From Macrostomum lignano (lineage: Eukaryota): DNA of 64,000 bases. How positions within the stretch are numbered: position 1 is the first letter of the stretch; each line of letters opens with the position of its first letter. This document shows positions 20,274-48,615 of this stretch, piece after piece. The stretch is from the NCBI GenBank assembly GCA_002269645.1, contig NIVC01000877.1:1-64000 (forward strand), written 5' to 3'. Under the pieces are notes generated by a model. That model saw nothing but the letters and a program-made list of their open reading frames with translations, searched no databases and was not told where the DNA came from. A program made the translations under genes and the position numbers.

Positions 20274-21627
20274 TCTCTTAGTCAGCTCCTGACTGTCCCT
20301 TTGCCGCCTAAGATTAATTGAAAGCAAGCGTCTGCAAGTGACTACTACCTCTCTCAGCTCAGCTCAGTAGCATGTCGCGCATGTACTACTACTGCAGCTT
20401 ACTACTAAAACGATGAGTAGTATGTCAGACTAAGAAATCGCAATTGCAATGCATTCAGCAGCAGATCAAACCAAATCGTGAATTATGTACAGAATCCGAA
20501 GCAGGCGGACTCTGTTGCTGCCCTGATATTCAAATTAGTCATCTGCGAATCTGTGTTCTCAAAGCCATAGATCTTCGAATTTATGGGCAAATTAACTGTA
20601 AATTAATGATTTTATTCTCAGTCAGTCTAATTTCGTAACCGTAATCAAAGTTGTTGTGCACAAGTTTACACACGCGACGTGGCACTCTTTGCTCTTTTGT
20701 GAATTCAGCTTTCTTGATTGTTAAATTGAGTCTTTTACAGCAATAATTGTGCTTGCAGCACATCGTGTTGATAAATGAAGAGAAATAAATAGCCGCATGT
20801 CTGACAGAGCTATTCGAAATTTTATTTCCGATCGGCTTCTTTAACGAATTGATTTGGTTAAACTGAAACTTCGCATGAAGATTGATGGCTAGTTTAGAAA
20901 TTAGGCGCCAAGGACCGCTGGATGTCACGGCTGTATCGGGATGTTGCTGTCGCATTAAATGACAGTTTATCTGAACGCTTGATTTCCTCATTTTCAAGCA
21001 CTTGATAAACATTGCAACTGGTAGATCAGCCTCCAGTTCAACACAAAGCAGCAATGACCGTTGATGAAGATGAATGCTCTTGTGTTCTGTTTACAAATGT
21101 AACTTGTAGTTGTCTTTTGGACGTGGCATGTCTTTTGACAGTGGGAAGAAAGTTAATATCTGGACTAGACCTCATCTGCTTTCGTCTGACAATACTGACG
21201 CCCAGTGATTTAGGGACATTGAGTACCGTTGGTTGTGTACATTTTACAGACTGTAAAAGAGTTTCTACCTCTAGTGTTTTGCGCTTTTTGCCTGCAGTCA
21301 AAGGGTTAGGGCTGAAACTCAATGCAAAGTCCACGCCCAAATCTCTATGCTCCGGTGTACTGGTTGGCGCGTCGCTAAGCGGACAGTGCAAATGATTGCG
21401 CTAATAATAGCTACAGCTGCACAAACGCTCTGCTAGAAAGCCTACCCGATAAAGCGCTTATTCATGTCTTGCGAGTACACTGAATCGCTACTGCGTTAAG
21501 TATTGAGTCGAAAGCTAGAGAGACGCGGCCACGAAACTAAAAGCAGTAAGAGCTGGACAAGTTTACACCGTCTACTCGTAGCTTTCTAATATTGTATTTC
21601 TTTTTCGTCCTGAGTCTTTTTGTTCCC

Positions 21628-24600
21628 ATGGAGTCGCTATGCAGCAGCGTTCTGAGAGCAGCAGTTGCAGTTCTGATGCAAGCCGTCGGCTGCACTGACG
21701 AGCGGAGCTCGGATGTTACCGACATGGAAATCATGCAAGCCGTGGTCACGGAGAACGAGGAAGTGATCAATCGATACCTGCAAAAGTCAGCAAACGTGAA
21801 CCGACTGATTACAATACTCGGGCACGGACTTTCGCCCCTGCACCTGGCCTGCAGGCTTGGAAAGCAACGAGTTTTAGATTTATTCGTAGCTGCCCATGTG
21901 GACGTCAATCTTCAGAATGCGAACGGCTGCTCGCTTCTTTACATGGCGTCACTGCATGGACGCGAGCAAATCGTGGACTCTCTCATCAAAGCCCAAGCCG
22001 ATGCAAACCTTCAGGAAAATGTTGCTGGCACTTTCCCGCTCTTTGTCGCTGCACAGGAAGGTCATAAAACGGTTGTGGATTTGCTCATTAAAGCGCAAGC
22101 CGACGTCAATCTTCAACCGAGCAACGGAGAGACAGCTCTCTACTCTGCATCCGAGCACGGTCACTATCGAGTTGTGGATTCACTAATCGAAGCGCAAGCC
22201 GACGTCAATCTTCAACAAGCAGATGGGTGCCCGCCTCTCTTTATCGCATCACAGAATGGTCATCAAAGAGTCGTGGATTCACTTATCAATGCTGGAGCCG
22301 ACGTCAATCTTCAAGGAAGCATTGGCGAGTCGTCTCTGTACATCGCATCGCAGAATGGAGACTGTCGAATCGTTGATTCTTTTATAAAGGCACAAGCGGA
22401 TGTAAATATTCAAAGAAGAACGGGCGAGTCTTCTCTTCTAATAGCATCACAAAATGGTCACCAGGCAGTTATTGACTCCCTTGTCAAAGCGCAAGCTGAT
22501 GTCAATCTTCAAAGAAGCACCGGTGACTCACCCCTCATTGTCGCGGCGAACCGTGGTCACCAGCAAATAGTAGACTCTCTGATCAAAGCAGGGGCCGATG
22601 TTAATCTGCAGCAAAACCAAGGAGGCTCCCCTCTGTTTGCTGCATCACAAAACGGTCACCAAAAAGTTGTAGCCTCTCTAATCAAGGCTCAAGCGGACGT
22701 CAATCTTCAAAGAGACACGGGCGAGTCGCCTCTATTTATTGCGGCCCAGACTGGCCACCAGCAAATCGTGGAGTCCCTCATCAGAGCGCAAGCGGATGTT
22801 TCTCTTCAGCGACACACTGGGGAGTCGCCTCTCTACATTGCTTCACAGAACGGAGATCTGGCAATGGTGGACTCCCTCATCGAAGCCCAAGCAGACGTGA
22901 ATCTCCAGCAAAACCAAGGAGGCTCGCCTCTCTACATCGCATCTCAGCTTGGACATCAGGAAGTTGTGGACTCGCTCATCAAAGCGCAAGCAAACGTCAA
23001 TCTCAAACGAAACTCCGGACAGTCGCCAATTTACATCGCATCGCAAAATGGGCACGTGAACGTCGTTAACTCCCTCATCAGGGCGCGGGCAGACTACAGT
23101 GTTGAAGAAGGTGCTGCTGACTCGCCTCTGTACATTGCAGTGCAGAATGGTTATCAGGATGTCGTGCTGACGCTAACTAAAGCATACTATGACAACGAAG
23201 TGAGTTCGGAAAAACTCACTCGGCAGACTGAACCTGCGATTTCTGATCGTCAGTAAGTCATCTAGATACTTTAGAACAGTATGCCAACAAAAACGTTTTA
23301 TAATTTGTTAGTAATTTGAGTCATTGGGTTGGGGCCCAGACAGAATAGGTGTTCTAACTTATGCCTGAGTTAATAAGTTTGTAGAATGCATCCAATATAC
23401 CAGTACTTCAAGTTTAAAATGTTACTGAATTCCAACCTTGGCTCTGCTAAACCAACAGAGCCGTCCTAAACGACCCAGAACTCAGTGAGGACCTGCACTC
23501 AGCGCTGACGCAGTCCGGATTCGTTGAATCTCGAGCTGCTCTACAGATCGCAACAGCCGATACTTTGCAAGAGATCATGCGAGAGAGAGTGGGCGATTCT
23601 GATATATTTGTAGTTGGCAGCTACTCAGAGGGCTGGGGAAACAGCCTGAAGACACTGGACGGCCGAACTGACATCGAGTCCGACATTGACGTGATGAAGC
23701 TCCAGGCAGGCTGTACCATCCGAGAGGCCTCTGCGAGTGCGCTGAAGAGAGTGCACAGCATGAAATGAGCAATGGTCACATTTGGTGCCCGGGATTCGGT
23801 AAAGTTGTCTCCATCGATTCTTATTTAGCTGTTATGTTTACTCTTAGAAGCAGTTACTATGGACACTCGGTAATTGCTTTTCTTTATGATCTTCTTGGAG
23901 TGCAATAATGTAATTATTATTTGTCAACATTGCAGCTTCGAAACCCGCCATAGCGACTGAAGGCTCCGCATTGAAGCCGGCTACAGACGACGTCTCTGCC
24001 AGTCGGCTCTGCTGCTACCCGCCAATCGCGCCGCTCCAACCAGAGCGACTCGAGAGCTCAAACATTCCAAAGCCGCTGCTCGAGGCCTTGCATCGGGTTA
24101 CTACTTCTGACTCAACGCCCTGTCACGTGGTGCACGCAGCCTCTCCTGGTCGAGGAGGCCAGGAGCTCCGTGTGAGCACCAGCTTCCTGGAGAAGCGGAT
24201 GCTCAGAAGTCTCACTACTCTCCAAGGCCAGCTGTTCGTCATTCTCAAGTACCTGGTCAAGAAGGTCATCTGCAGCAAGGACGGCTTCAACCAGCAAGGC
24301 CTTAAATCGTACCACGCGAAGACTATCACGTTCCGAATGGTGGAGGAGACGCCGGTCGAGCAGTGGAAGCCGGAGAACCTCGTAAGTCTCGTGAGGAGGT
24401 CGCTGCAGATTCTGCTTGGCTGTGTGGAGAGCAGTCGCTTGCCCGACAATGCTCACGGCCGGATCATGGAGCACTTCTTCCTGAGCGACGTCGCTGTGTA
24501 CCTCAAGGGTGTCGGCCAGAAGGGTGAAAGCATGGGCCAGACTCTGGGCAGCATCGCGAGCACACTGAGAACAGTGATTGATCGGCTGCCTCAGCTGCAG

Positions 24601-25407
24601 CAGCAGTTCATGAGCAGTCTGAGACCCGTGAGCGACTCAGGAATATTCTACTTCCATCCGTTCCAAATCCTGCCTGATTTGAGACCAAGACCGCCGCCGC
24701 CTCAGCCTGACAGTCTGGAGTATCACGTGATTTGCGACGTAGTGAGGGAGTGTCTGGTGCGTCTCTCCCGCGGTGACTGCAGCCCGCAGTCTCAAGAGTC
24801 GCTCACAGAGCTGATTGCCAGACTGCCAGACTGCGCCGGCTCAGCTCGGGAGGCTCTCAGAGCGCTGGCGTGCCTGAAGTTCGGCTACCGAGGAACTGCA
24901 GAGAGAATCGTGAGTCAGTGCAGAGGCCTCTCGGTGAGCAGAGGCATCGCTTGGTCCGCTGAGAGGTCGGCGACCGAGGCAACTACGGAGTTCGTTTGGC
25001 GGCATCTGAGAAGCCGGGACTCCGCGTGGAAGTTCTGCTTTCGGTTTGAAAAGAGGCCTGAGTTCGCCTTCCTTGCCAGAGCCGTGCAAGAGATTTTCCC
25101 CCAGAATGTCGGAAACTATCCGCAGGTTTTCTTCATCAACTTTGACGCCCTGCTTTTGGCGCTGTGCGATGAACTGGATGCCCGGGGCGGCTCCTTTGTT
25201 GCTAGCCGGATCCAAGATATGGCGCAGCGAGAGGACGCTGATGAACAGGAATTGCAGGTGGGCATTCTGTTTTCTATGGACTTCACCGAAGCCACGGCTC
25301 TGATGGAGCGGCTGGCTGGACTGACTGGCGGAATTCCCAGCTGGCTGCGCGATGAGCTGCGCAAGAAATGGCTGCCAACTGGCGTCGCTGACCTTCAGCT
25401 TCAGTGA
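21628..25407 (+). CDS. Ankyrin-repeat / Mab-21 (cGAS-like receptor, cGLR) nucleotidyltransferase fusion, paralogue 1 (one frameshift as assembled)
   Basis: Exon 1 21628-23252 (14 ANK repeats; donor CA|GTAAGT, phase 2). Exon 2 23459-23798 (acceptor AACAG|A, phase 2; [29 protein letters not shown]). Exon 3 23936-25407 (phase 1; TDDVSA third Asp, [43 protein letters not shown] of the Mab-21 C-lobe). Frameshift near 23710. About 1145 aa if corrected. Confidence 0.85.
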
Positions 25408-25700
25408 CCATCGTTGACCTTCAGCTTCAGTGACCATCTCTGACCTTCAGCTTCAGTGACCATCTCTGACCTTAAGCTTCAGTGACCATTGCTGACCTTT
25501 AGCTTCAGTGACCATCGCTGACCTTGAGCTTCAGTGACCATCGCTGACCTTTAGCTTCAGTGACCATCGTTGACCTTCAGCTTCAGTGACCATCGCTGAC
25601 CTTCAGCTTCAGTGACCATCTCTGACCTTCAGCTTCAGTGACCATCGCTGACCTTCAGCTTCAGTGACCATCGCTGACCTTCAGCTTCAGTGACCCTCGC
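25387..25700. repeat. 26-bp minisatellite (GCTGACCTTCAGCTTCAGTGACCATC) overlapping the ANK-cGLR1 stop codon
   Basis: About 12 copies; the first unit is the last codons plus TGA. Confidence 0.95.
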
Positions 25701-26234
25701 TAACATCCACCATGAGCACAAACACGAATTCCTCTGCCTTGAGCAAAACAACCTGAGACCTGAGCACCATTAGAGAGTTTATGAGAGTGTGGATTAGTCA
25801 AAGATATTTATTTTGTAACTGTTTTCACAACAGACCAAGAAAATGTGATAGTTTGTTTAAATCTAGGATATAACAGCTATATAGTGGCTTTATTTTCAAT
25901 ATTAAATAAACTTTGGCAGGTGTTATGGAAATGCAGAATTGAAGAAATGCAGAAATACAAGGCGCCTCTAAACGGCAGTTCACATTACCGCTTGCAGCTC
26001 AGTTGCTCAAATATTGCTCAAATTAATGTAGAGCTCGTTAAGATCTGTTTTAAATTTTGACAAAAACTTTTCAGTATCTACGAGATTTTAATTATAAATT
26101 TTTTCTGTATTTCGTCAATATTTATTACCGATACTAAGTATGTAATCATGTACGCTCGTACATTTCTACAAAGTCTGTAGGTGTTGCATTAATTAGTTTC
26201 CGGCAGTAAGTAAACGAAGCTTCAAACGATCGAA

Positions 26235-27627
26235 CTCGTGTACACCACACCGGGACATCCACCTGCAGTCATGTACACCACACCGGGACATCCACCTGCA
26301 GTCATGTACACCACACCGGGACATCCACCTGCAGTCATGTACACCACACCGGGACATCCACCTGCAGTCATGTACACCACACCGGGACATCCACCTGCAG
26401 TCATGTACACCACACTGGGACATCCATCTGCAGTCATGTACACCACACCGGGACATCCACCTGCAGTCATGTACACCACACCGGGACATCCACCTGCAGT
26501 CATGTACACCACACCGGGACATCCATCTGCAGTCATGTACACCACACTGGGACATCCATCTGCAGTCATGTACACCACACTGGGACATCCACCTGCAGTC
26601 ATGTACACCACACCGGGACATCCACCTGCAGTCATGTACACCACACCGGGACATCCATCTGCAGTCATGTACACCACACCGGGACATCCACCTGCAGTCA
26701 TGTACACCACACCGGGACATCCACCTGCAGTCATGTACACCACACCGGGACATCCTACTGCAGTCATGTACACCACACCGGGACATCCATCTGCAGTCAT
26801 GTACACCACACTGGGACATCCATCTGCAGTCATGTACACCACACCGGGACATCCACCTGCAGTCATGTACACCACACCGGGACATCCACCTGCAGTCATG
26901 TACACCACACTGGGACATCCATCTGCAGTCATGTACACCACACCGGGACATCCACCTGCAGTCATGTACACCACACCGGGACATCCACCTGCAGTCATGT
27001 ACACCACACCGGGACATCCATCTGCAGTCATGTACACCACACTGGGACATCCATCTGCAGTCATGTACACCACACTGGGACATCCACCTGCAGTCATGTA
27101 CACCACACCGGGACATCCACCTGCAGTCATGTACACCACACCGGGACATCCATCTGCAGTCATGTACACCACACCGGGACATCCACCTGCAGTCATGTAC
27201 ACCACACCGGGACATCCACCTGCAGTCATGTACACCACACCGTGACATCCACCTGCACTCATGTACACCACACCGGGACATCCATCTGCAGTCATGTACA
27301 CCACACCGGGACATCCATCTGCAGTCATGTACACCACACCGGGACATCCATCTGCAGTCATGTACACCACACTGGGACATCCATCTGCAGTCATGTACAC
27401 CACACTGGGACATCCATCTACAGTCATGTACACCACACTGGGACATCCATCTACAGTCATGTACACCACACTGGGACATCCATCTACAGTCATGTACACC
27501 ACACTGGGACATCCATCTACAGTCATGTACACCACACTGGGACATCCATCTACAGTCATGTACACCACACCGGGACATCCATCTGCAGTCATGTACACCA
27601 CACTGGGACATCCATCTGCAGTCATGT
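26235..27627. repeat. 33-bp minisatellite (CATGTACACCACACCGGGACATCCACCTGCAGT)
   Basis: About 42 copies; explains the 11-aa repeat ORFs on both strands. Confidence 0.97.
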
Positions 27628-28751
27628 TTAATCCTAGCTGATAAGAAATCCGAGCAGATGAGCTGAGAACTGATACAATTTGCTGTGCAATTTTCATCCT
27701 TTAACAGAAAAGTGCAGCCTGTTAAGCACAACTGGTAGTCGGGGCACAGAGCGGAGGTCACATGACATGAGCTGGTCTTCTTTTGATGACGTCATAAATT
27801 TACGAGTAGCTGAAGCGGAGTCCTCTGCTCCGCTGACGTTTTTGCCTGTTTAAGTGAACAATTCCGACTAACATGGTTGAAAGCTTTTTCTTGTACGAGA
27901 CAGTAAACTGAAAATTGATGAATCTCAAACAAAAATCTTGTTAAAACAGTTATAAAATCGCTACAAAACAGGTGCTTACGTCTAACTTGAAGAAACTGAA
28001 GATTTTTCGTATCGCGGCTGCTCTCTCAGTGTGATGGAGAGAGCACAGGTAAAAAAACAGCTAAAGCAATAAAAGAAGCAGTTAACCTATGATAAACAGA
28101 TTCCACTCAAAGTGCTACACAAAGCTAAAAGAATCAAAGTTTCTTGCAGACTTTTGTCTGAATTTTCACGTCTACTAAAAGACAAAGCCAAGATTTCTAA
28201 GGCAGATTCATTTACTCAGCCGTCAGCACGGATCCTACATGTAAATTACGAGACACACAGGAGCTGCTGCTAATGCTGGTGCTCGATCGCGCAGCAGAAG
28301 CTGCAGTCTATGGTCTTGACCCTAAGGTTTTCACGCTACGGCCAGGCGGCTGTAGAGTGGCCCATCCAGGCAATATGGAATCTCGTGGTCGCCAGTGTGT
28401 GGCCAGGGAACTTTTGTCTATGGTCGAACTTTTGCAGGGGCAAATTGAAATCAGGCCACGTCGTTTCATTTCGGCTTGCTAATTTCGACTACATTCCTTT
28501 GGCCCTCGAAATGTAAGGAACAATATGGATATGTCTATGGTTAAGAGGGCCGAAATAGCATGAATACGAGGGCTGCTGCAGAACATGCTCGAAACCATAG
28601 ACATATCTTGCTATTGTGGGTCACTGCATGACTATGGCGGAAGGCAACCTCATCGCTATTATCTAGATTTGTATCAGCCAGGAATAGAGCTCTGGTGTGA
28701 TTTACTCGCACGATCTAGGTTGGTCTGGTCTTGCAACCCACGGTCTTACAA

Positions 28752-29233
28752 GTCAAAGGCTTCCGCAATCAAAGGCTTCAGCAGTCAAAGGCTTCAGCAA
28801 TCAAAGGCTTCAGCAGTCAAAGGCTTCAGCAATCAAAGGCTTCAGCAACCAAAGGCTTCAGCAACCAAAGGCTTCAGCAATCAAAGGCTTCAGCAACCAA
28901 AGGCTTCAGCAATCAAAGTCTTCAGCAATCAAAGACTTCAGCAATCAAAGGCTTCAGCAATCAAAGGCTTCAGCAACCAAAGGCTTCAGCAATCAAAGGC
29001 TTCAGCAATCAAAGGCTTCAGCAATCAAAGGCTTCAGCAATCAAAGTCTTCAGCAATCAAAGACTTCAGCAATCAAAGGCTTCAGCAATCAAAGGCTTCA
29101 GCAACCAAAGGCTTCAGCAACCAAAGGCTTCAGCAATCAAAGGCTTCAGCAACCAAAGGCTTCAGCAACCAAAGGCTTCAGCAATCAAAGGCTTCAGCAA
29201 TCAAAGGCTTCAGCAATCAAAGGCTTCAGCAAC
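28752..29233. repeat. 16-bp minisatellite (AAAGGCTTCAGCAATC)
   Basis: About 30 copies. Confidence 0.96.
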
Positions 29234-29252
29234 CACGAGTCCTTGTTCTGAA

Positions 29253-30095
29253 TCAGGCCGTCCCTGACACTCGAACGGCGAATTCTCCAGCCACGGCCTT
29301 CAGCTCGTGCGGCACAACGGGGAATCTCAGCAGGTGGCAGGCGTCCAGGTGGAGCAGCACGGCCTGGCAGCGAATCAGACACTCGTTCAGGCCCTGCACG
29401 GGCTTCACGGTGCGGTAGAAGGGCCCGCTGGAGGAGGTCACGTTCAGGTAGACTCGATCGGCAAAAGTGAAGTACTTGCTACACTGGAAAGACAAATGAG
29501 AGTTCACAGCAGTTCTGGTGAGACTGACTGAGTGAGCAGTTACAATTCAGTAAATTTTGTACTGTACCAGCATGTGTGATTTATCCTGATTTACCACAGT
29601 TTAAATCGGCCTTGAGGATTGCACCTTCTCAAACATGTACGCTGAGTGTACTTTTCATGCCAAATTAATGAATATTGTTTTAGAACAATTTCACTCACCT
29701 GGACGAAGGTAGACCTGCCGGTACACGGAGTTTCTCCAATCTGATCCCCAGACTTGAGCAGAGTTGCCGCCGCAGTTCCTGTTGCAGTCGCTGTCGGCAG
29801 CCTGGCCGAGGGAGCCATACGAGTTTGCACAGAAGCATTCCACTGAAATCTGAATGCCAAAGTACTCAAAGTTTCCATAGGCGCAGATCTCGCTGCACAG
29901 TTTCAGAGTCATGTTGTCGAGGCTGACAAATGACCCGGACACCGAGTACGGCCCGATGGTTGACCTGCCTTCGAGTCCTGTGAGGTCTCGAGTTGGGCCG
30001 TCCACGAAGCAGCCCACCGGGCCGAATTCGGCGCCCAGCGAGCAGTCGAAAGCGACGCAGCAGCAGAGAAGCGGCAGAATTGATGAGTCCTGCAT
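29253..30095 (-). CDS. Secreted WSC-domain protein, probably with a degenerate PAN/apple-like C-terminal module
   Basis: Exon 1 30095-29699: signal peptide MQDSSILPLLCCCVAFDCSLGA, then GCFVD...MTLKLCSEICA...YFGIQ...ECFC...SDCNRNCGGN...RNSVY (WSC pattern), donor G|GTGAGT. A downstream high-GC3 exon ends at stop 29253 (ECLIRCQAVLLHLDACHLLRF); its acceptor is uncertain. Confidence 0.75.
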
Positions 30096-31696
30096 TGTCA
30101 GCGGCTGGCTCGTGGCTTTTGTCTCTTGCTTGGGCTGTCGGCTTATGGATTTTCCCAAATCATCAGTTGGGGTGACGGGCGTGGCAACGGCGATGCTTAG
30201 TAAAATTTATTTGTCGTTTTTCGCTAAAATATTGCGTTGTTAAAGCGACAGTGCAAACTGTTTACTGGGGGCGGCTTGCAGACTCTGCGCTGCATCACTG
30301 CTCCCACATCACGCGACACATCCCAGTGTGGCGTTCGGATTATTTTAAGGCAGTTTTGCATGATTTCTCAACCCAATGCAGGCAGGCACGCTGTCGATTC
30401 TCAGCCTTTTTTCGGTCACGATCGAAAAAATCTATGGATTGAATATGAAAAATGATTTGCATTTGCATTATTCTCATAAATTAAAGCAAATTTTTTTAAT
30501 CTCTCAAGGCCTATTGTAGCAAATTAGATTTCATTTTCAAATCGCGTCTCATCTCGACTGATTTGTTCGGTACCAGTTTTGCACCTGTTTGCTTGAGTCA
30601 CTTTTCTGCATGTACCTCAGTCAGGAGCTTCACAGAAACTTTGTGGGCCTGTTTGGTGCATAAGCCACTTACAGTTGGCGAAAAACAGAGAAAAGAAGAC
30701 AAAAATTATCGAATTCACTGTCAAGCAAATGGAGCTGAAGATTATGCAAAAGTTACTATAATTACAAAAATTCTAAATCTCTTTCTGGTGTCCATAGTCA
30801 TGGTTTCGTCTGTTGAAGGTGTCGGCGGTTTTGGGGTGATGACGGAACGCTTGAGAGACTGGCTGAGGATGTCCAGCAGTTGAGGCTTGCTTAGCGAAAC
30901 TAGTGATATTTGCATCAGGGTGTCCATCGTCACCTGCTGCCACCTGTTGCAGGTCCAGAAGCTCGGAGCTGATGCAGACGCATGTGGTCGACGTGCTGAT
31001 GAAATTTGGAGGCTGGGCAAGGCTGCACTGAGGCGCAGGGCTGATTGGCACACAGGGGTGTAGTGAATAGAAATGGGAAAAATCCGACCTTCTGGCAGAA
31101 CCGTCGAATAGCTAGGGCTGGCGACTTGATTCTTGTTTGAAAAGGGTTGTCTACCGGGCCCATAAATCTGATGAATTAGTCTCGCACCCATGGCCAATTT
31201 TGGTTCAGAGAATGTGAAAAAGCAGGCGATCAAACTCAGATTCTTAAAAAGAAGTTTTCATTTAATATTGAAGATGTATGCAGTATTTCAAGTCAGTGCT
31301 CGTCAATACTGCAAATTGGCTCGTCAAATTGGTATATTTATAACAAAATAAATAAATAACGAGGTTTTGAAGCAAAAAATGCACTAAATTCGAGCCAAAT
31401 AAAAGTCTATTTCTATTTTATTTCTATTTAGAAATAAAAATAGAGTTTATTTCTATTAAGGTCTTCTTATCGGAACACCTTGTAACCTATTTGAGAGAAT
31501 AGCTTAAAATAGCAATTTTCAAAACGCAGAAATCGATTCCTTGTATTTTGTAAGTAACTTGCATAAAAATATAAATTGATTTTACCGTAGACAATCACTA
31601 AGTAGATTCGAAGACTTGAATAGCTAAAAAATCACGAGTATGTTTCGACGAAAACAATTGCAAACTATTGCCAGCTCAAAGTGAAAAAGTGCAACC

Positions 31697-34600
31697 ATGT
31701 GGACAGCCTGGACTCTCGTCGCCCTGTTGGTGGCTGGCTCAGCCCAGCTCGGTGAGTTCGGGGCCTGCGCGGCCAGGCTGTTATTCACTTTTTTAGCGAG
31801 CCGAAAGCATCACTCGAGGGGTGAAGTGCGCGACTGAGGAAAGAAGCGAAATTGAAGAGCCAACCAGAAGGCAGCGAGGGAGAGAGAAGAAAAGAAGGGG
31901 TGAAATGCGCGACTAAGGAAAGAGGCGAGGCTTAAGAGCCAACCAGAAGGCAGCGAGGGAGAGAGAAGAAAAGAAGGGGTGAAATGCGCGACTAAGGAAA
32001 GAGGCGAGGCTTAAGAGCCAATCAGAAGGCAGCGAGGGAGAGAGAAGAAAAGAAGGGGTGGAATGCGCGACTAAGGAAAGAGGCGAGGCTTAAGAGCCAA
32101 TCAGAAGGCAGCGAGGGAGAGAGAAGAAAAGAAGGGGTGGAATGCGCGACTAAGGAAAGAGGCGAGGCTTAAGAGCCAATCAGAAGGCAGCGAGGGAGAG
32201 AGAAAAAAGAAGGGGTGGAATGCGCGACTAAGGAAAGAGGCGAGGCTTAAGAGCCAATCAGAACGCAGTGAAGGAGAGAGAAGAATTTAATTAGACAGAG
32301 AGGGAGAGAAAACAGAGTAAGCAGACGAGGGCAAATAATAATAGTGCAGATAAACTGAATAGAAGATTAAGATAAGTTGAAATACACCTTCCAAAAATGA
32401 TACACTTTTTATTTTACGAGTTCAAACTGAACTTTGAAATAGAATTATAATTAGAAAGCGAATTAACAAAAAATGGTGTACAAAAGTATTAGAAAAGAAA
32501 TGCAATATGAATATGAATATAAACCTAGGTGTAGAGACTGGGGGACTGCGAGACAGACTGCCGGCTCTGCATGCAGCCACAGATCCAACAATGTCCTTAA
32601 AGACATCACAAACCAATCGGTTAAAATGAAGCATTTCATCTCTAACTCAGGCCAAGCGAACACCAATAACTCCGTGACCCCGGTGACCTGCTATCACGGC
32701 GACCAGACTGACCTGACCGCCAGCTTCCCAAGCGGATCGCCGACTTGCTCGGAAGTCGCGTGGAGAAAGAACGAACACTTCGGCAAAAAGTGAGAGGGAC
32801 AGGAAAAAATATGGTGATGCGCGACAATGGAAAGGGTTGAGGCTTGAAACAAAGGCGCAAGAGGATAGTTAAGAACCCTGGAATGCGCGCTGTGAGGCGA
32901 CTTGACTTTCTATTGCGCTGGGAGGAGAGAGGGACGAAGCGCGACTAAGAAGAGGCGAAGAATTGCTTGTAGAAGATTGCCAAAGAACCTGTGAAGAGAG
33001 AGATTGCTTACAGAATTTAATTGCAGAGAAGAGCAGAGAAGCAGAGAGCAGAATATTGCTTGCAGAAGATTGCTTAGAAGATTAAGATAGCTTGCAATAT
33101 TGCAAATGAATATTGCTTGCAGAAATTGCTTGCAGAAATTGCGATTGCAAAGAATATGTGTAAATATTGCAGAATATTGCTTGCAGAAGAATTGCCTGTA
33201 GAAGATTGCTTGCAGAAGACTGCTTGCATGCAGAGATTGCTTGCAGAAGATTGCACAGAATATTGTTAGAAGATTTCTTGCAAAGATTGCAGAAGAAATT
33301 GCTTGTAGAAGATTGCTTGACCAGACTGCTTGCGCAGAAGAATTGCCCTGTAGCGAAGATTGCTTGCAGAAGACTGCAATAGAATATTGGAACACTTGCA
33401 GAAATTTGCTGAGAGAATATTGCTTGAAGATTGCTTACAGAATATTTTGCATTGCTTGCAGAAGATTGCTTACAGAATATTGCTTGCAAAGATTGCCTGA
33501 TAGCTTAAGATTGCTTGCAGAAGACTGCTTGCAGAAATTTGCTGTGCAGAAGCTGCTTACAGAATATTGCTTGCTTGCAGAAGATTGCTTACAGAATAGC
33601 TTAAGAGAAGAATTGCCTGTAGAAGATTGCTTGCAGAAGACTGCTTACAGAATATTGCTTGCAGAAGATTGCTTACAGAATATTGCTTGCAGAAGATTGC
33701 TTACAGAATATTGCTTGCAGAAGATTGCCTGTAGAAGATTGCTTGCAGAAGACTGCTTGCAGAATATTGCTTGCAGAAGACTGCTTACAGAATATTGCTT
33801 GCAGAAGATTGCTTGCAGAAGATTGCTTGCAGAAGATTGCCTGTAGAAGATTGCTTGCAGAAGACTGCTTACAGAATATTGCTTGCAGAAGATTGCTTGC
33901 AGAAGTATTGCTTGCAGAAGATCGCTGCTTACAAAAACATTACCAGAACCCTACTATCAGTTTTGCAAATCGGTTCATGCCTTATTAACAGTACATGTTG
34001 CCTTTCTAAAATTGTTTCTTTACAGCTGAGTACCAATTGCTCCATGCACGCGGATACTTAAAAACATTGAGCTTTCCACTGTACGATCTTAGAGCATTAA
34101 CCATTGTACTTCAATCTCAATGCACGCAGCACACCAGGTTTTACTGCGGCCGATGCCCGCCTGACTTGAGAGCAGCGGATTGTCGCGAGTGCAGCAGGGA
34201 CCGCTGCAATGCCAACTTCGCCATGGAACTGGTGGCGCTGATGCCCAACTTGAGGCGGTGCTATGTCTCGGTGAAAAAAAACCGCGTCATCTCCCCTACA
34301 CGACTCTTTTGCGCTGGAAACCAGAGCTGCTCAACCAGCAGCAAGCCAGGCCACGTGAGTTGAGCTGTCGCTGTCCTGCTAAATACTGTATCCAAATTCC
34401 GTGGGGGCGTAGCCTAGTGGCCTGACGCGGCGCTCTGATGTGCTGTGGTCCAGGCTCGAATCCAAGTGCCATCACATTAATTTGGGGCTAAATTGGAATC
34501 ACGTACTGGTGGCCCAAACCCTAAATCACAGTGACGCTGTACACTCCTGCGCGCCTGTGTGCCTGCTTAGGGAAGTCGGCGGAATGGGAAGTAATGCCTC

Positions 34601-34952
34601 TCGCTGGTTATAAGACAATGTCGCTTAAAGTGCGCCATGTCTCTAACTAAATGAATGGAGATTCCTGGATTTGCGGCGGTGACAGACTGACTCGCCCGTC
34701 CGCGCCCCCGAATTCCAGTCCATCCTGGTTGGCTGCGAGTCGCACTGCGGCATGTTCAGCTGGGAAAACTGCGAGTTCTGCCACACCGACCTGTGCAACA
34801 TTGGCGGGGAAACCTTCAATAATGAGAAAGTCCGAACAGTGCTCAGCGATCAGACAGTTTCTGTGAGCAGTCCCAGGGCCGGGCCAGCAGCTCTGGTTGC
34901 GGCTCTCGCCGCGGCAGCCCCGCTGCTGGCTGTGAGACTGCTCAGACTTTGA
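31697..34952 (+). CDS. GPI-anchored protein with two Ly6/uPAR-like (three-finger-type) cysteine modules
   Basis: Exons 31697-31751 (signal peptide MWTAWTLVALLVAGSAQL), 32651-32789, 34138-34354, 34686-34952; phases 1,2,0 are all compatible. Both modules start with CY and end in C-x2-C-x4-CN (CRECSRDRCN, CEFCHTDLCN). Hydrophobic C-terminal GPI-like signal. Confidence 0.78.
31820..32285. repeat. 79-bp purine-rich tandem repeat (about 6 copies) in Ly6-like gene intron 1
   Basis: Period 79 (AGAGCC at 31935, 32014, 32093); four units carry AGCCAATCAG. Confidence 0.93.
32960..33925. repeat. Degenerate ~14-bp minisatellite (GAAGATTGCTTGCA / GAATATTGCTTACA)
   Basis: Intron 2 of the Ly6-like gene; progressively more homogeneous toward the 3' side. 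Confidence 0.92.
34403..34637 (+). mobile_element. tRNA-derived SINE, copy 2 (internally shorter)
   Basis: Head GGGGGCGTAGCCTAGTGG...CCAGGCTCGAATCC with A and B boxes; shares GCTGTACACTCCTG and the 3' end with 16645-16976; lies in intron 3 of the Ly6-like gene. Confidence 0.8.
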
Positions 34953-35545
34953 CAGTAGCTCAGAACTGATCGACTCAACTTGATATGCATTTTTATTTTT
35001 GCCTAGACTTACATTTTAAATGCTAATTAAGTCAGCTGGAAATAAACGCTAACATTTTATTGTGTTTAGCGCAGGCTAAAGTACGCAAAATCTAGGAATA
35101 CACCTGTTGCGGAAGAGTTTTTTCTACCGGTCAAATTTGAATTGAAACAATTCTAGAACTTATCGGTGCCCCCCCTACTCAACATCTCCGTAAACAGAAA
35201 GTCTTAGTTAAGTGAAAGACTTAGTTAAGAAATTCTCAGTTCTGTCGCTGGGGTGAACAGCAGTACATACCTGGTTGGGTCGCTCCGTTAGCATTATTTA
35301 ACTTTCTTCCAACTAGTTCTATCGGCCCTAATTATTATCTTCTATCTCTCACAACTGCTTTAGACGCTAATAGTACACCATAGGTTATGGAGCATGGACA
35401 TATGGCATTTTATTTCTGTGCATTCATTGGACATTGGCATCACCCATTGCAAATATTTGCTTCTACTCTCTCACCCCACTACTTATTTGGTCAGCCTTTC
35501 CCAGAGCGCACTTGCAAGCGAGTGTCACAATCTGCTAAAGGTAGC

Positions 35546-38500
35546 ATGGGTTTGCTGTGGAGAGCTCTGTCATCTATTGCTGCAGTGTTGATGCAGGCCG
35601 CTGGCTTCGCAGCAGAAGCTCGAAGCCAAGATGTGACCGACAAGGAGATCGTTGAGGGATTGTACACTGAAGAGGAGCAAGTCATCCACCGATACCTTCA
35701 GAATCCGTCGAATGTGGAACGGTTAATAGAAATTAATGGCCTAAGGCTGACAGCCCTGCACCTGGCCTGCGGTCTCGGCAAGCCAACAGCTGTAGAGCTC
35801 TTTATTGCTGCCGGAGCCGACGTTAATATCCAAAGAGTTACTGGGGAGACACCTCTTTATTTCGCAGCGCAGAACGGTCATAGCAAAGTAGTAATGCGTC
35901 TCATCAGAGCACGGGCTTCGGTTGATCTTCAAGAGGTTGTTAGCGGTTCCTCACCTCTCTACATCGCGTCACAGAACGGTCATATTCAAGTTGTTGAACT
36001 ACTACTCAAAGCTCAGGCGGATGCCAATCTCCAAGCAAAGAACGGTGCCTCACCTCTTCTGGTTGCGTCACTGAATGGTCATCAAAACGTCGTGAAGGCA
36101 CTTCTTCAAGCACAAAGCGATGTCGATCATCAAGCTGGCACGGGGGAGTCTCCTCTCTACGCTGCGTCACACGAAGGTCGTCAGCAAATTGTGGACCAAC
36201 TCACCAAAGCTCAGGCCAACTTCGATTTGCGCACGAAAAACGGCTTTTCAGCCATTTACATTGCGTCACAAAAGGGTCATCACAGCGTTGTGGATTCGCT
36301 TATCAAAGCCAAAGCTGATGTCAACCTTCGAGCGAATGATGGCTCCTCACCTCTCTACGCCGCCTCATTTATGGGCAATCAGCTCGTTGTGAACTCGCTA
36401 GTCACGGGACTAGTTGAAATAAATTTAAGAACTTTGCAAGGTTGCTCGTCTCTCTACATTGCGTCGGAAAAGGGGTATCATGAAGTCGCTGACTACTTGA
36501 TTCAAGCAGGAGCCGACGTTAATCTCCTACTGGATACTGGCGAGTCACCTCTGCACATTGCGTCACTAAACGGTCACAAAGAAGTCGTTGACTTACTCAT
36601 CAAAGCACAAGCCAATGTCGATCTTCAAGAAAAAACCAATGGCTGCTCACCCATTTATTTGGCTTCGCAAGAGGGTCATCAACAGATCGTAGACTCGCTC
36701 ATTAAAGCTCAGGCCGACGTCAATCTTTCAATTAAAGCTGGCGTGTCACCTCTCTACACCGCATCACAAAACAGTCATCATGAAGTTGTGGAATTGCTCA
36801 TTCGAGCACAAGCCGATGTCGACCTTCAAGATACAGTTCACATCTCTTCACCTCTTTGGTTGCGTCACAAAACAATCGCTTGAAAGTCGTAAGACTGCTC
36901 ATTGAGGCCCAGGCCGCAGTAGATACCCAGATAAAAAACGGCTGCTCACCTCTGTCGATTGCCGCAATGAATGGAAATCTATTTTTGGCGGGCTTGCTCG
37001 TCAAAGCGCAGGCCAACGTCAATATTCAAGCAAAAACTGGCGAGACACCGCTTATTCTTGCATCAAAAATGGAAATAAGAGGGTTGTGGAATCACTGGTC
37101 AGGGCACAAGCTGACATCAATCTCAAAGACAACAATGGCAGCTCGCCTCTCTACGTTGCGTCCATCAATGGTATGCATCACGTCGTGGACTCGTTAGCCT
37201 ATGCACAAGCTGACGTCAATCTTCAGGCAGACAACGGCTGCACACCTCTTATTGCCGCATCGCAGAACGGCAACCAGAGAGTCGTTGATATACTTGTAAA
37301 GGCTCGAGCGGATGTCAATCTTCAAGAAGCGCACGGATGCTCAGCGGCTTACATCGCATCCCAGAACGGTCATACAGACGTAGTGAAGTCGCTCGTAAAA
37401 GCACAAGCCGATGTCAATATTCAAGCAAGTACCGGCTCTTTACCTCTCTACATTGCGGCTCAGAAAGGTCATGGAAAAGTCGTTGACTTACTCATTGCCT
37501 CAGGCGCTGATGTGGACCTCCAAGAAATCGATGGTTGCTCAGCAATTTATGCAGCGACAGCCAACCGCCATCAACAAGTCACGATATCCCTCATTAGAGC
37601 ACAAGCTGATGTCAATCTTAAAGACAAAAATGGTACACCGCCCCTCCTTATTGCAGCGGATAAATGTTTTCCCCAGTTAATGAGACAACTAATCAAGGCA
37701 CGAGCTGATGTCAATATTAAACATAAAACTTGTTTCTCGCCCCTCTACATTGCGTCACAGAAAGGTCATCATGAAATTCTGGACTTGCTCATCGACGCAG
37801 ATGTTGATGTCAATCTTCAACTCACTGCTGGCGTGATACCCCTTTGTGTGGCTGCACTAAACGGTCATCAGAAAATAGTGGATTCTCTCATTAAAGCACA
37901 CGCTGACGTCAATCTTCAGCACAGGTCCGGCGAAACTGCTGTTTACTTTGCCTCGGGGGAAGGTCATTATCAAGTCGTGAACTCCCTCATCGAAGCAAAA
38001 GCCGACGTCGAGCTACAGTTAAAAGATGGCTGCTCACCTCTCATAATCGCGTCACAGAACGGTCATCAGCAGGTAGTGGACTCGCTAATAAAGGCACAAG
38101 TTGATGTCAATCATCAAAAGCACTCGGGATCCTCAGCTCTCTACATTGCATCACAGAATGGTCACGAGAAAGTTGTCGACTCGCTCATCAAGGCACACGC
38201 CGATGTCAACATCCAGACAGATGATGGCTGTACATCTCTAACAATAGCGTCTCAAGGAGGTCATCGGGGAGTTGTTGAAGTACTTATTAAAGCGCAAGCT
38301 GACGTCAATCTTCCACTCAAAACTGGCGAGTCACCTGTCTATATGGCGTCACAAAATGGACACTACGAAGTCGTTAAATCCCTAATAAAGGCAAACGCCG
38401 ACGTCAATCTTCAGACGAACAGCGGCTCCTCTCCTCTGAGCATGGCCACGCAGTTCGGTCATCAGCAAGTGATACGACTGCTCAAAAAGTCGATAAATAG

Positions 38501-41312
38501 TATTTGCAGTAGCGAAACAGATGCCAGCGCTTCATCGCATCAGCCTGGACTGCCTAACACGGATTCAGGGTAAGGTCAAACTTTTTTATGTACTGCATGT
38601 CATTTTTCGCATAGCAAGTCATACATTAAGGAACACAGTTGTGTACTTGCCATACAAATTTATGCTTGACCGCTTATGTTCCATTAATGCTCATTCAAAT
38701 GCAATTCATTGGGCCACCAAATCACACCCACTGTTTTACTTACTACTTTACTTGAATTAGCTGCAGGGGCTTCGTGCGTCCGGAAACAGCGAGGAGGCGT
38801 TGCCGCCCATTTCGCTGACCCCTGGCGACCACGGGCAGCTGGTGCTGCGGTGTCGCGCAGGGAGTTCCGGTGGCGCCGGTGTCCGCAGCGCGGTCCCCCT
38901 CCGGAGAGTCCAGGAGGTGGATTTTCGCTCGCCTGGTAGCCCTTAGGTAGCGGACGAGCTGGCAGAGATTCTCGGGCCTGAAAACGTCGGAGAGGTCCGG
39001 GTTTGGGCCGATGTGGGTGAGCCTGTCCTGAGTAAAGGCGGGGCATTCACAGATTATGTGCTCCACATTCTCGACCCTCCACTGCGGATTTTTCCCTGGA
39101 GTTGACGATGCCTGGCAAAACAGCCATGACCAGAGAGGGCCATGGTCACCGCCCTGATGTCCCTGTGGTTGAGTCGAAGCAGGGCCCTGCGCAGGGCGGA
39201 AGAAGGACAGGGACAGCCGCGCGGGATTGCCGGCAGTCGGGGTGTTGGCCCACCTCTCCCTGTGCTTAGAGGCCAGCTCGTTGCCGGGGTGGCCCGTTTA
39301 CTTACTACTCTTAACATATTTTTCGTTTTTAGCCTTTTGGTCACCGACGACTCAGAGCTGAGTCAGCGGCTGTACGCGGCGCTCACTGGGTCAGGATTCA
39401 CGGACAATCGAGCTGCTCTGCAGAGCGCAGTTGCCGACACAATGCAAGAAATATTGAAGAAAAGACTGCCTGCCACTCAGTACTTTGTAGTTGGCAGCTT
39501 CTCCGAAGGCTGGGGCAATAATTTAAGCACGCTGGATGGCAGAACCGACATCGAGTCCGACATCGATGTGATGGACCTGATTTCGGGGAAACTCTACCAC
39601 CCGACCGGCCTGTGCGAGTGCAGCGGGGATCCAGACAGGCACGAACTGAGCAACGGCCACATTCAGTGCCCCGGGTTCAGTAAGCAACTTTTTTGGCTTC
39701 TTGCCTGAGTATTTTGCCAATCTTTAACCTCGGACACTGCATACTCCTTTGAACTGACTCAGACGTACTAAACAGAGCAATCCAGTCCACTTCTCTACAC
39801 ATTTCAGTCCTCTATTTACTAAGCACCTGTCCCAGTTTTACATTTCAACCCGCAGCATCGAATCCCGCGTTTCCGATTAACGGATCTGCACTGAGGCCCG
39901 CGGTGGACAAAGTTAGTGCTAGCCGGCTCTGCCGATACCCGCCTATCGAGCCACTTCGATTTCATCGTTTCTTAAAATCAAAAATCCCGAAGTCTGTTCT
40001 TAGGATTCTTCAACAGGATGTCGAATCTGACTCAACGCCCTGTCATGTGGTGCACGCAGCCTCTCCTGGTCGAGGAGGCCAGGAGCTCCGTGTGAGCACC
40101 AGCTTCCTGGAGAAGCGGATGCTCAGAAGTCTCACTACTCTCCAAGGCCAGCTGTTCGTCACTCTCAAGTACCTGGTCAAGAAGGTCATCTGCAGCAAGG
40201 ACGGCTTCAACCAGCAAGGCCTCAAGCCGTACCACGCAAAGACTATCACGTTCCGAATGGTGGAGGAGACGCCGGTCGAGCAGTGGAAGCCGGAGAACGT
40301 GAGGAGGTCGCTGCAGATTCTGCTTGACTGTGTGGAGAGCAGTCGCTCGCCCGACAATGCTCACGGCCGGATCATGGAGCACTTCTTCCTGAGCGACGTC
40401 GCTGTGTACCTCAAGGGCGTCGGCCAGAAGGGTGAAAGCATGGACCAGACTCTGGGCAGCATCGCGAGCACACTGAGAACAGTGATTGATCGGCTGCCTC
40501 AGCTGCTGCAGCAGTTCATGAGCAGTCTGAGACCCGTGAGCGACTCAGGAATATTCTACTTCCATCCGTTCCAAATCTTGCCAGATCTGAGCACAAGGTC
40601 TCCACCGCCTCAGTCCACAAACAGTCTGCAGTACCATGAGATCTACGATGTGGTGAGGGAGTGTCTGGTGCGTCTCTCCCATGGTGACTGCAGCCCGCAG
40701 TCTCAAGAGTCGCTCACAGAGCTGATTGCCAGACTGCCAGACTGCGCCCGCTCAGCTCGGGAGGCTCTCAGAGCGCTGGCGTGCCTGAAGTTCGGCTACC
40801 GAGGAACTGCAGAGAGAATCGTGAGTCAGTCCAGAGGCCTCTCGGTGAGCAGAGGCATCGCTTGGTCCGCTGAGAGGTCGGCAGCGGAGGCAACTACGGA
40901 GTTCGTGTGGCGGCACCTGAGGAGCCGGGACTCCGCATGGAAGTTCTGCTTTGAGTTCGAACTGAGGCCTCGAATGTCATTCTTTACTAGAGCTCTGTCT
41001 GAGTGCTTTCCTCAGAATGCCGGCAATTATACTCGGTGCTTCTACCTGAACTTTGACGCTCTGTTGTGGGCTCTGCGCTTTGAGCTTTCATGTTGCAGTG
41101 ACTCTAGCGCTCAGGCGTGGATCCGGGATGTGGCTGAGCGAGCGGACGCGGACCAGGAGGAACTGCAAGTGGCCATCCTGTTCTGCTCGGAGCTCGAAAC
41201 TGAAGCCATTCTCAGCGAGAAACTGGGGAAAATCACTCGTGGTATTCCGGAATGGCTTCTGACGGAGATCAGAAGAAAAAGACTGTCTGCAGATCCGAAC
41301 TACATTCAATAG
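35546..41312 (+). CDS. Ankyrin-repeat / Mab-21 (cGLR) nucleotidyltransferase fusion, paralogue 2 (two 1-nt homopolymer frameshifts as assembled)
   Basis: Exon 1 35546-38569 (28 ANK repeats; donor GG|GTAAGG, phase 2). Exon 2 39333-39679 (acceptor TTTTTAG|C, phase 2; [29 protein letters not shown]). Exon 3 39856-41312 (phase 1; [16 protein letters not shown]). Same intron positions and phases as paralogue 1. Restoring 2 nt gives 4830 nt, about 1609 aa. Confidence 0.85.
38748..39296 (-). mobile_element. 5'-truncated, decayed non-LTR retrotransposon (LINE) 3' end in ANK-cGLR2 intron 1
   Basis: Minus strand encodes [25 protein letters not shown]...[14 protein letters not shown], typical of the C-terminal GH...EH...CP region of LINE ORF2 (frameshifted, CxxC missing). 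Flanked by the 13-bp direct repeat TTTACTTACTACT at 38735-38747 and 39297-39309 (TSD). Confidence 0.8.
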
Positions 41313-44848: not shown

Positions 44849-45879
44849 CCCTAGCCAGTGTTCTATCTCTTGAGTCTCGAGGCCTCACAAATGAAAAGAA
44901 CTCCCACAGAGGCAATATCGCAGATTGGGAAGGCGCTCCATCAATCTTAGTAGCAGAGTTCCAGCCTCCCAGTTTTCTTGGCCTCGAAATCCCGGCGCAA
45001 AAGTGCATCCTCTTTTTATCGAAATGAGGAGCGGCGGCGATGAGGGAGGAAGCTGCGGGCCGCCTGAGTACAGGATGCAGCTCTGTGCTCAGAGGGGGTG
45101 AGGGGGTGAGGATCCTGGGCGTGAGGCATCCCTAATTCTGTATCGAACTCGAGCCTCCACCTCAGAATGTTTCTCTCCGTTCCATATTGATGCATTATCG
45201 CAATATCTTCTACCTATACTAAATCTCTCTAAAATTCTGAGTCTTTGAGATGCAAATAAACGCACTGATAGGTCTGCACTAACGAATTCTGTAATGCAAT
45301 AAATATTGTTATTATTGCAATGCATTTACGCTTTGTGCGTTCGGCTGAGCCACCAGGGCAGATGCTGAGGGGGGGGGGGTTGGCTCAGGCAGAGGGTGGG
45401 TGAGGAGGGCCTCCGCCCGTCTGCCCCGCACAAATTTGAGTACATGTGAATTTGAGCAGGGGCTGCAGTGGCACTGAGAGGTCACAACCAGTCGGCCCTG
45501 ATAAGAGCACGAGAGCGCGCGTAGAGATACGAACAGAGCAGAGTACTGAGTCTTCAGAAATATTTCAACTGCTCTGGGTTCTGTGGAGCTTCGACCAGAG
45601 GCCCAGGCATTCGCAGGCCCAGCTAATCAAGTTTGCATTGAGCTTTTTTTGCAGTTCGTACTTGCAACAGCGCAACACAGATTGAGACTTCTGCATTTTC
45701 TAATTATTTCTCTTTCTAAGAAAGGCGTCCTCCGACTGGAGATTCGATTGGATTGGAAAATAATTCAATTATCTGCCGAAGTCTGCAGACCCATGTCCGA
45801 TCAGGGTAGCCTGTCAGGTGATCAGTGATCTTGTGGATTGATAGCTAGATTGCCGCCAATCTCGTATAGTGATAGCTAT

Positions 45880-47986: not shown

Positions 47987-48615
47987 ACTCGGAGCCGGGA
48001 GCGGTGGGCGGGGCCGGCAGCAGCGGCGGCAGCGGCGGGGACGGAGAGGCGAACTCCTCGAAGTTCAGCGCCCAGTCCGTGAGCCTTCGCGCCCAGAAGA
48101 AGCTGATCGGCAAGCTGGCCAACCAGAAGGCGGTGAAGATCTTTATCGACGCCACCTCGGCGCGAGCCTTCGACTCCATTTACCGGATTGTGAAGCTGCA
48201 CACGGGGTCGCGGAGCCGCGCCCAGAAGACCATGAAGCACATCGTGAAGCTCAACATGAAAGTCGCCGTGCTGTACACGCACGACATCCTGTCGGAGAGC
48301 GAGAAGGCCCTCGCCGATCAGTTTCGCGACCGCTTCAACGACCTCGCCACCGACCTGGTGCTCATGCAGCGGGGTCGCCGGCAGCTGGACAAGGAGAAAC
48401 TGGCCAAGCAGTTCAGGGACTGCGAGGCCATCGCCCTGCGGATGGTCCGGCGGCACCTGAGCGAGAAGTCGCTGACCAGCATTCGCACCTGCTCGGATCT
48501 GTTCACGGAGCCCCGCTTCCTGCAGGCCCTGTTCGACCCGAGCTCGCCGCTGGCCCCGCACATGACCAGCCTGTGCCAGGATGTGCAGGAGCTGCTGGAC
48601 AGGGGCGTGGTCTGA
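47987..48615 (+). CDS. TNFAIP8: TNFAIP8/TIPE family protein, main coding exon
   Basis: Acceptor CCGCAG|AC (phase 1). FSAQSVSLRAQKKLIGKL...IDATS...KHIVKLNMKVAVLY...RHLSEKS...FLQALF...LLDRGVV aligns along its length with the TNFAIP8 family. The short start exon was not identified. Confidence 0.9.

Follow-up and report, generated by a model that had tools for sequence, protein, structure and literature searches.

Two diverged ankyrin-fused cGAS-like receptor genes of Macrostomum lignano share one gene plan, and neither is intact as assembled

The window analysed here is a stretch of 64,000 nucleotides from the flatworm Macrostomum lignano (NCBI GenBank assembly GCA_002269645.1, contig NIVC01000877.1, positions 1 to 64,000, forward strand). 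It carries two same-strand (+) paralogues, gene 1 (21628-25407) and gene 2 (35546-41312), each encoding an array of ankyrin (ANK) repeats followed by a core of the Mab-21 family that resembles cGAS. A first reading made from the sequence alone had proposed a tandem pair of ANK-fused cGAS-like receptors (cGLRs) and had called them catalytically competent. The ANK-fused, cGAS-like identity is borne out by our analysis, and both genes carry the catalytic signature that is conserved throughout the family. The two genes are indeed paralogous and on the same strand; however, they are not adjacent, and the ~10 kb between them holds satellites plus at least one WSC-domain exon on the minus strand. A tblastn search of the 64-kb window found no third copy of the ANK-cGLR.

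Both genes follow a common plan: an ANK exon, a phase-2 intron, an exon encoding the GS...DID segment of the active site, a phase-1 intron, and a final exon with the third catalytic Asp and the Mab-21 C-lobe (Table 1). The four introns are all of the GT-AG type. The phase-2 donors and acceptors named in the sequence-only reading are found at the proposed bases, and the VVGS[Y/F]... GS-to-DID segment is encoded by exon 2 of both genes. The TDDVS/VDKVS, [S/P]YHAKT, WKPEN and EHFF motifs are all present in the third exons. In gene 1, the ANK exon is one uninterrupted frame (541 codons plus 2 bases), lying within an open reading frame (ORF) at 21592-23256, whereas the ANK exon of gene 2 is spread over three overlapping ORFs (35387-36883, 36856-37197 and 37086-38573). 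The ankyrin repeats are 33 residues long in both genes.

Table 1. Features of the two ANK-cGLR genes, of their pairwise alignment and of the neighbouring sequence (a slash within a nucleotide motif marks an exon-intron boundary; omega, ratio of nonsynonymous to synonymous rates; dS, synonymous divergence)
Feature	Position	Strand	Details
Gene 1 exon 1	21628..23252	+	Met at 21628; leader MESLCSSVLRAAVAVLMQAVG... and ~14 ankyrin repeats; Ank_2 E=1.4e-133; donor CA/GTAAGT, phase 2, last exon base 23252
Gene 1 intron 1	23253..23458	+	206 nt, GTAAGT...AACAG, phase 2; M. lignano relative with same position and phase
Gene 1 exon 2, nucleotidyltransferase N-lobe	23459..23798	+	acceptor ...AACAG/A, first exon base 23459; GS 23616-23621; D-I-D 23682-23690; donor G/GTAAAG
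Gene 1 intron 2	23799..23935	+	137 nt, GTAAAG...TTGCAG, phase 1
Gene 1 exon 3	23936..25407	+	third Asp GAC 23986-23988; Mab-21 C-lobe; C-terminal domain of ~250 residues; TGA 25405-25407
Gene 2 exon 1	35546..38569	+	leader and ~27 contiguous ankyrin repeats; donor GG/GTAAGG, phase 2, last exon base 38569
Gene 2 intron 1	38570..39332	+	763 nt, GTAAGG...TTTTAG, phase 2
Gene 2 exon 2, nucleotidyltransferase N-lobe	39333..39679	+	acceptor ...TTTTAG/C, first exon base 39333; single intact frame; GS 39493-39498; D-I-D 39559-39567; donor A/GTAAGC
Gene 2 intron 2	39680..39855	+	176 nt, GTAAGC...CCGCAG, phase 1
Gene 2 exon 3	39856..41312	+	third Asp GAC 39906-39908; Mab-21 C-lobe; C-terminal domain; TAG 41310-41312
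5' flank of core alignment			nucleotide identity 65.7%; omega 0.26 (dS 1.2)
Tract A	24115-24666 / gene 2 40035-40574	+	identity 98.0%; omega 0.35 (11 differences)
Divergent island between tracts A and B			69 nt; identity 73.9%; omega 0.13 (18 differences)
Tract B	24736-25017 / gene 2 40647-40928	+	identity 95.7%; omega 0.16 (12 differences)
3' flank of core alignment			nucleotide identity 59.6%; omega 0.28 (dS 1.6)
Protocadherin-like gene	12863-18657	+	three long unbroken exons; cadherin domain E=1.6e-27
WSC-domain exon between gene 1 and gene 2	29691-30158	-	PF01822, E=2e-13
TNFAIP8-like ORF	48004-48612	+	PF05527, E=3e-46
Mitochondrial DNA polymerase gamma gene	50752-57295	-	best database identity 49%
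EF-hand calcium-binding protein ORF	59955-60962	+	

Pfam searches recovered ANK families with E-values down to 1e-133, and PF20266 (Mab-21_C) in exon 3, at 26.5 bits for gene 1 (cut-off 24.1) and at 16.8 bits, below the cut-off, for gene 2. A profile of family members without ANK sequence, compared with the sequences in the PDB, matched mouse and human cGAS at E ~6e-5 and Drosophila cGLR1 at E=0.015, with the match lying over the C-lobe helix; a profile that included the ANK columns had given ankyrin proteins only. The fold was predicted with AlphaFold2 for P0001, an M. lignano protein 65% identical to both window cores. Based on an alignment of 106 sequences, the model of P0001 reached a predicted local distance difference test score (pLDDT) of 94.6 and a predicted template modelling score of 0.94. 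This run replaced an earlier one on 12 sequences, in which the N-lobe was poor (pLDDT 60.7, with residues 42-202 below 50). The top 50 Foldseek matches of the model were cGAS, MAB21L1, MB21D2 and MiD51, at a probability of 1.00 and target-normalised template modelling (TM) scores of 0.42-0.59. The predicted structure of this relative agrees with the assignment made from the sequence alone.

The active site of cGLRs has been described by the pattern [DE]h[DE]h-X50-90-h[DE]h (Li et al., 2023; bioRxiv 10.1101/2023.02.22.529553, PMC9980059). Gene 2 encodes GS, DIDV and, after 52 residues, VDK in one frame, which fits this pattern and is close to the ~55 residues originally estimated between DID and the third Asp. 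Gene 1 encodes the same active-site residues, with a frame break between DID and the third Asp. Across the 106-sequence alignment, the catalytic positions are strongly conserved, with G in 86/90 sequences, S in 82/90, the two Asp of DxD in 86/92 and 87/94, and the third Asp in 88/95. The alignments also contain the extended signature GS.SEGWGN.L..LDGRTD..SDIDV together with a family-specific C-terminal domain.

An exhaustive profile search returned 851 proteins at E<1e-3, 85 of them at E<1e-30, the latter being representatives of clusters at 50% identity. In most of these 85 representatives, the core is located at the C-terminal end of proteins of 800-1400 residues. The C-terminal domain comprises ~250 residues, and only the close members (E<1e-30) cover profile positions beyond ~340; neither Pfam nor the PDB sequences gave a match for this region. 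More distant matches that we sampled (E 1e-11 to 1e-16) carry PF03281 in addition to PF20266, and one of them also has TPR repeats.

In a set of 29 extracted ankyrin repeats, the most variable positions are those on either side of the repeat-initial Gly and those where helix 2 starts. These positions form the usual binding surface of ANK repeats. The pattern is compatible with a binding role, to which it would not be specific. The cores have isoelectric points of 5.9 (gene 1) and 8.2 (gene 2) and are thus not strongly basic, which, by the trend described by Li et al. (PMC9980059), provides no support for nucleic-acid sensing. The N-lobe also contains an insertion between DxD and the third Asp (23711-23798 and 39592-39679), in which the positions YH....C.C.....NGH are kept in about half to two-thirds of the relatives. 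Judging from this motif, the His and Cys residues might form a metal site, located elsewhere than the zinc thumb of cGAS.

The core of gene 2 matches 38 proteins, with an identity of at most 65-69%. All are from M. lignano save two unattributed records, P0027 (metaclust) and P0034 (labelled Kangiellaceae bacterium). In many of the 38, a single polypeptide combines ANK domains with PF20266. P0005 and P0012, both full-length models, begin with a Met that is followed by a leader homologous to those of the window genes (one of these being MESLCSSVL), and strong ANK N-termini are found in P0041, P0045 and P0078. The gene of P0002, at the M. lignano locus L001, has a phase-2 intron (GG/GTGAGT...CAG/G) 8 residues before LSQRL and a phase-1 intron after PGY/A, and both positions and phases are those of gene 1 and gene 2. 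An N-terminal ANK exon, a phase-2 intron leading to the core and a phase-1 intron after ...PG[FY] thus occur in gene 1, gene 2 and L001. Because the introns of L001 share position and phase with those of the window, they support the fusion of the ANK array with the core in the window genes. The splice junctions first proposed from the sequence alone agree with this annotated relative. The phase-1 intron that had been predicted to join the DID exon to the third-Asp exon would do so in gene 2, whereas the corresponding donor of gene 1 (last exon base 23798) is out of the DID frame. A cGAS-like fold and conserved catalytic residues characterise the family, and in annotated relatives the core is joined to an ANK array. 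Around the M. lignano loci L001 and L002, no neighbour gene of the window was found within 10 kb.

Two further members of the family have unusual contexts. In P0039 (1346 residues), ANK sequence separates two family cores. Either this protein has tandem domains or annotation has fused two adjacent genes, which suggests that the tandem arrangement recurs in the family. P0034 is a 347-residue member on a 1065-bp contig of a metagenome-assembled genome labelled 'Kangiellaceae bacterium', and probably represents eukaryotic DNA mis-binned into a bacterial genome.

The sequence-only reading had left open whether this architecture was already described in the lineage. Li et al. (2023; PMC9980059) reported ankyrin or TPR modules on some cGLRs and found most platyhelminths to be without cGLRs; their main text does not mention Macrostomum. 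Table S2 of that study lists six M. lignano proteins with an N-terminal Ank_2 domain (PAA67649, PAA58690, PAA68676, PAA86972, PAA45980 and PAA68216), and Table S3 (rows 89-93) lists five M. lignano cores cloned for a biochemical screen. These five cores show the motif GS..EGWGN..SD.D, as in the window family. Our literature searches found no dedicated study of Macrostomum ANK-cGLRs. The ANK-cGLR architecture is therefore already catalogued in the Macrostomum lineage and functionally uncharacterised, and the window genes are two diverged additions to a family catalogued in 2023.

Like the window genes, the M. lignano ANK-cGLRs (PAA86972.1, PAA45980.1 and PAA68676.1; P0002, P0005 and P0012) have an N-terminal ankyrin array and a long C-terminal extension. 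They share with them the core motif GS.[SA]EGWG..L..L.G.TD..SD.D, a third Asp within P.[VLI]D.V.A..C.YP., the C-lobe motifs RVSTSFLE, LQGQ.F, YHAKT and HFF, and the same two intron positions and phases. The window genes differ from these catalogued proteins in their identity (at most 65-69%), in the broken frames of both copies, and in the longer array of gene 2 (~27 repeats). A second comparison can be drawn with cGAS, Drosophila cGLR1, Stylophora Sp-cGLR1 and the Crassostrea cGLRs. These have in common with the window family the bilobal Mab-21 fold (as modelled for P0001), GS and three acidic residues at the published spacing, and a C-lobe helix of the form KYL...SYH.KT...W.P.NL. Unlike them, the window family has an N-terminal ANK array, ~9 extra residues between GS and DxD, the insertion with partly conserved His and Cys between DxD and the third Asp, and the extra C-terminal domain of ~250 residues. 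Cnidarian ANK-cGLRs (Li et al., 2023, Fig. 4C; PMC9980059) combine a cGLR core with ankyrin repeats as in the window, a likeness by description only; a possible role of their repeats in protein-protein or protein-ligand interaction was proposed. MAB21L1, MB21D2 and MiD51 share the fold of the P0001 model. However, Mab21L1/2/3 have no predicted functional active site (Li et al., 2023; PMC9980059), whereas the window family keeps GS and all three acidic residues. Because both copies carry these residues and the family conserves them, we do not place the window genes with non-catalytic proteins of the MAB21L1 type.

Gene 1 and gene 2 diverged to different degrees along their length. Identity rises to 98.0% and 95.7% in two exon 3 tracts, against 60-66% in the flanking coding sequence, which points to recent gene conversion over ~0.85 kb, covering the C-lobe and part of the C-terminal domain. 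Judged from the synonymous divergence and omega values of the flanks, the duplication is old, with both copies under purifying selection for most of their history.

As assembled, neither copy has an uninterrupted coding sequence. In gene 1, the frame of GS...DIDVM reaches a TGA at 23766-23768, and the conserved segment LYHPRGLCEC...NGHIWCPGF, together with the phase-1 donor, is in a frame other than that of DID. The break is located at ~23700-23712 (CAGGCAGGCTG; ~23706), where gene 1 is one base short compared with gene 2 and all relatives. We considered whether alternative splicing could rescue gene 1. The sole phase-1 GT sites in the DID frame (GGCT/GTACCA and GCGA/GTGCGC) are poor donors and would remove conserved strands, and this possibility was rejected. 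The ANK array of gene 2 changes frame twice, at ~36850 (CTCTTTGGTT; SSPL/VASQNN) and at ~37065 (TCAAAAATGG; ILAS/KNGNKRVV), and is nevertheless contiguous. In addition, gene 2 is without 12 nucleotides after 40298, which gene 1 has as 24379-24390 (encoding LVSL). The corresponding segment, W..PENLVSL.R.SLQ, is 15-16 residues long in 90/90 aligned relatives and 11 residues long in gene 2. The proposed catalytic competence is therefore not supported for either copy as assembled: the translation of gene 1 ends between DID and the third Asp and does not reach the C-lobe, and gene 2 has no continuous translation through its ANK array and carries a unique 4-residue deletion in the C-lobe.

A related situation is seen at locus L001 (NIVC01002284.1, 6350-8798). 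There, for 1.6 kb upstream of where P0002 is annotated to start, the sequence still encodes ANK repeats, preceded by a leader of the family type (MLQTILLLLMQTAG...). Two one-base frame breaks, at ~6635 and ~7488, separate these upstream repeats from the annotated gene. Because repeats and leader extend upstream of the annotated start across the two breaks, the annotated P0002 protein is probably truncated at its N-terminus.

Several repeats surround or invade the two genes. A 26-bp minisatellite (25385-25701, 12 copies, 94% matches) begins within the last 8 codons of gene 1 and includes its stop codon. The first intron of gene 2 is lengthened by a GC-rich insert to 763 nt, compared with 206 nt in gene 1, and antisense ORFs lie within this insert at 38743-39344. 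The Cys/His-rich product of these ORFs (HIICECPAF...) was considered as the tail of ORF2 of a retrotransposon lacking long terminal repeats, which was not confirmed, as Pfam gave no match. Between and after the two genes, tandem arrays occupy 26239-27627 (33 bp x42), 28753-29232 (16 bp x30), 31817-32285 (79 bp x6), 33048-33926 (14 bp x63) and 42180-44849 (22 bp x121), and yield long spurious ORFs on both strands. Among the neighbouring genes (Table 1), the C-terminal exon of the protocadherin-like gene had no M. lignano match in the protein database. The C-terminal exons of POLG (56106-55363, 52135-51764 and 50880-50752) join seamlessly when compared with Lingula and Helobdella proteins, and one POLG intron contains a tandem repeat that can be read as an ORF.

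The evidence is best described by two old, same-strand ANK-cGLR paralogues of a Macrostomum type, which share one plan, would act by a cGLR-like mechanism in intact members of the family, and are both interrupted in the window; we consider this reading likely. Several points weigh against it. Splicing and expression of the window genes are predicted from a relative, and the structure is that of P0001 rather than of a window protein. PF03281, the Mab-21 nucleotidyltransferase domain, had no Pfam match in the window exons, and exon 2 matched generic nucleotidyltransferase families weakly (E 0.009-0.03). In Table S3 of Li et al. (PMC9980059), the enzyme-name column, filled elsewhere with names such as Sp-cGLR1 and Cg-cGLR1, is blank for all five M. 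lignano cores. Lastly, pseudogene status is uncertain, with breaks confined to T3, A5 and G2 runs, omega well below 1, and an M. lignano paralogue with a like break. If the ANK ORFs and the nucleotidyltransferase/Mab-21 ORFs were separate neighbouring genes, the fusion itself would be an artefact of gene prediction. The splice joints of the window do rest on comparison with relatives, a stop follows just beyond the donor site in each ANK frame, and P0001, the closest relative, has no ANK sequence within 10 kb upstream. We nevertheless regard this explanation as highly improbable, given the many independent M. lignano models that unite ANK and core in a single polypeptide (P0005 and P0012 over their full length), the intron positions and phases conserved in L001, the same fusions in Table S2 of Li et al. 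(PMC9980059), and the lack of a separate start codon in exon 2 at the conserved core N-terminus. As for the broken frames, all three are one-base shortfalls in short homopolymers (CTTTGG, CAAAAAT and CAGGC), and because of this a young pseudogene and a consensus error cannot be separated by the breaks themselves. Both genes could be intact and functional if the long-read assembly were poorly polished in this multi-copy, internally repetitive family and the three breaks were consensus errors. The paralogue omega of ~0.26, which indicates long-standing constraint, and the two breaks of the same kind in the ANK array of L001 would fit such errors. By contrast, the 12-nt deletion of gene 2 removes part of a segment that is length-invariant in 90/90 relatives and is not an error of the homopolymer type; the other long exons of the window are unbroken (three cadherin exons, ~3.2 kb in total, and the C-terminal exons of POLG); and the near-identical conversion tracts, which should be hardest to polish, have no one-base indels. 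We therefore give somewhat less than an even chance to both genes being intact, and lean slightly towards a real, young pseudogene in the case of at least gene 2.

The remaining question concerns the function of the intact members. In these, the Mab-21 core would synthesise a nucleotide second messenger once activated, like other cGAS-like receptors; the ANK array may serve as a protein-binding, ligand-binding or regulatory module, and the family-specific helical C-terminal domain may be regulatory. The same fold could also belong to a protein without cyclic-nucleotide signalling, either one that, like MAB21L1 or MiD51 (both of which are among the Foldseek matches), serves as a scaffold or binds nucleotides, or a transferase that acts on a different substrate. 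The five M. lignano cores of the published screen all lack an enzyme label (Table S3, PMC9980059), the spacing of 20 residues between GS and DxD is ~9 longer than in the mollusc cGLRs of that table, and cGLRs are reported absent from most platyhelminths. On the other hand, GS and the three acidic residues are kept in more than 90% of relatives, as opposed to the Mab21L proteins with their lack of a predicted functional active site, and the motif fits the published pattern with X=52. Because the cores were screened without their ANK array and against nucleic-acid ligands only, a negative result would say little about the family. A non-signalling role thus seems quite unlikely to us, and we retain the cGLR-like mechanism for intact members.

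A more far-reaching proposal is that the Macrostomum-type ANK-cGLRs form a large receptor repertoire with fast turnover. Here it would be the ANK array, instead of a nucleic-acid groove, that recognises pathogen proteins or other ligands, with the C-terminal domain gating the nucleotidyltransferase, and signalling might proceed via a receptor other than canonical STING. This idea draws on the at least 85 clusters at 50% identity, on arrays that range from ~14 to ~27 or more repeats, on gene conversion and on possible pseudogene formation. We put it forward as speculative and, taken as a whole, rather doubtful.

The two genes show that intron structure is conserved in this family and that gene conversion has acted between paralogues. 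They also call for caution with predicted proteins, since the frame breaks in the window copies and in at least one other M. lignano locus are hidden when automatic annotation starts the protein downstream. If the repertoire proposal were true, it would describe a signalling system in a phylum whose cGLRs are otherwise reported as largely lost. Where intact and active, ANK-cGLRs would be cGAS-like sensors that take their specificity from a repeat array, which would widen the range of what such receptors can detect and would make Macrostomum a tractable flatworm in which to test repeat-array sensing.

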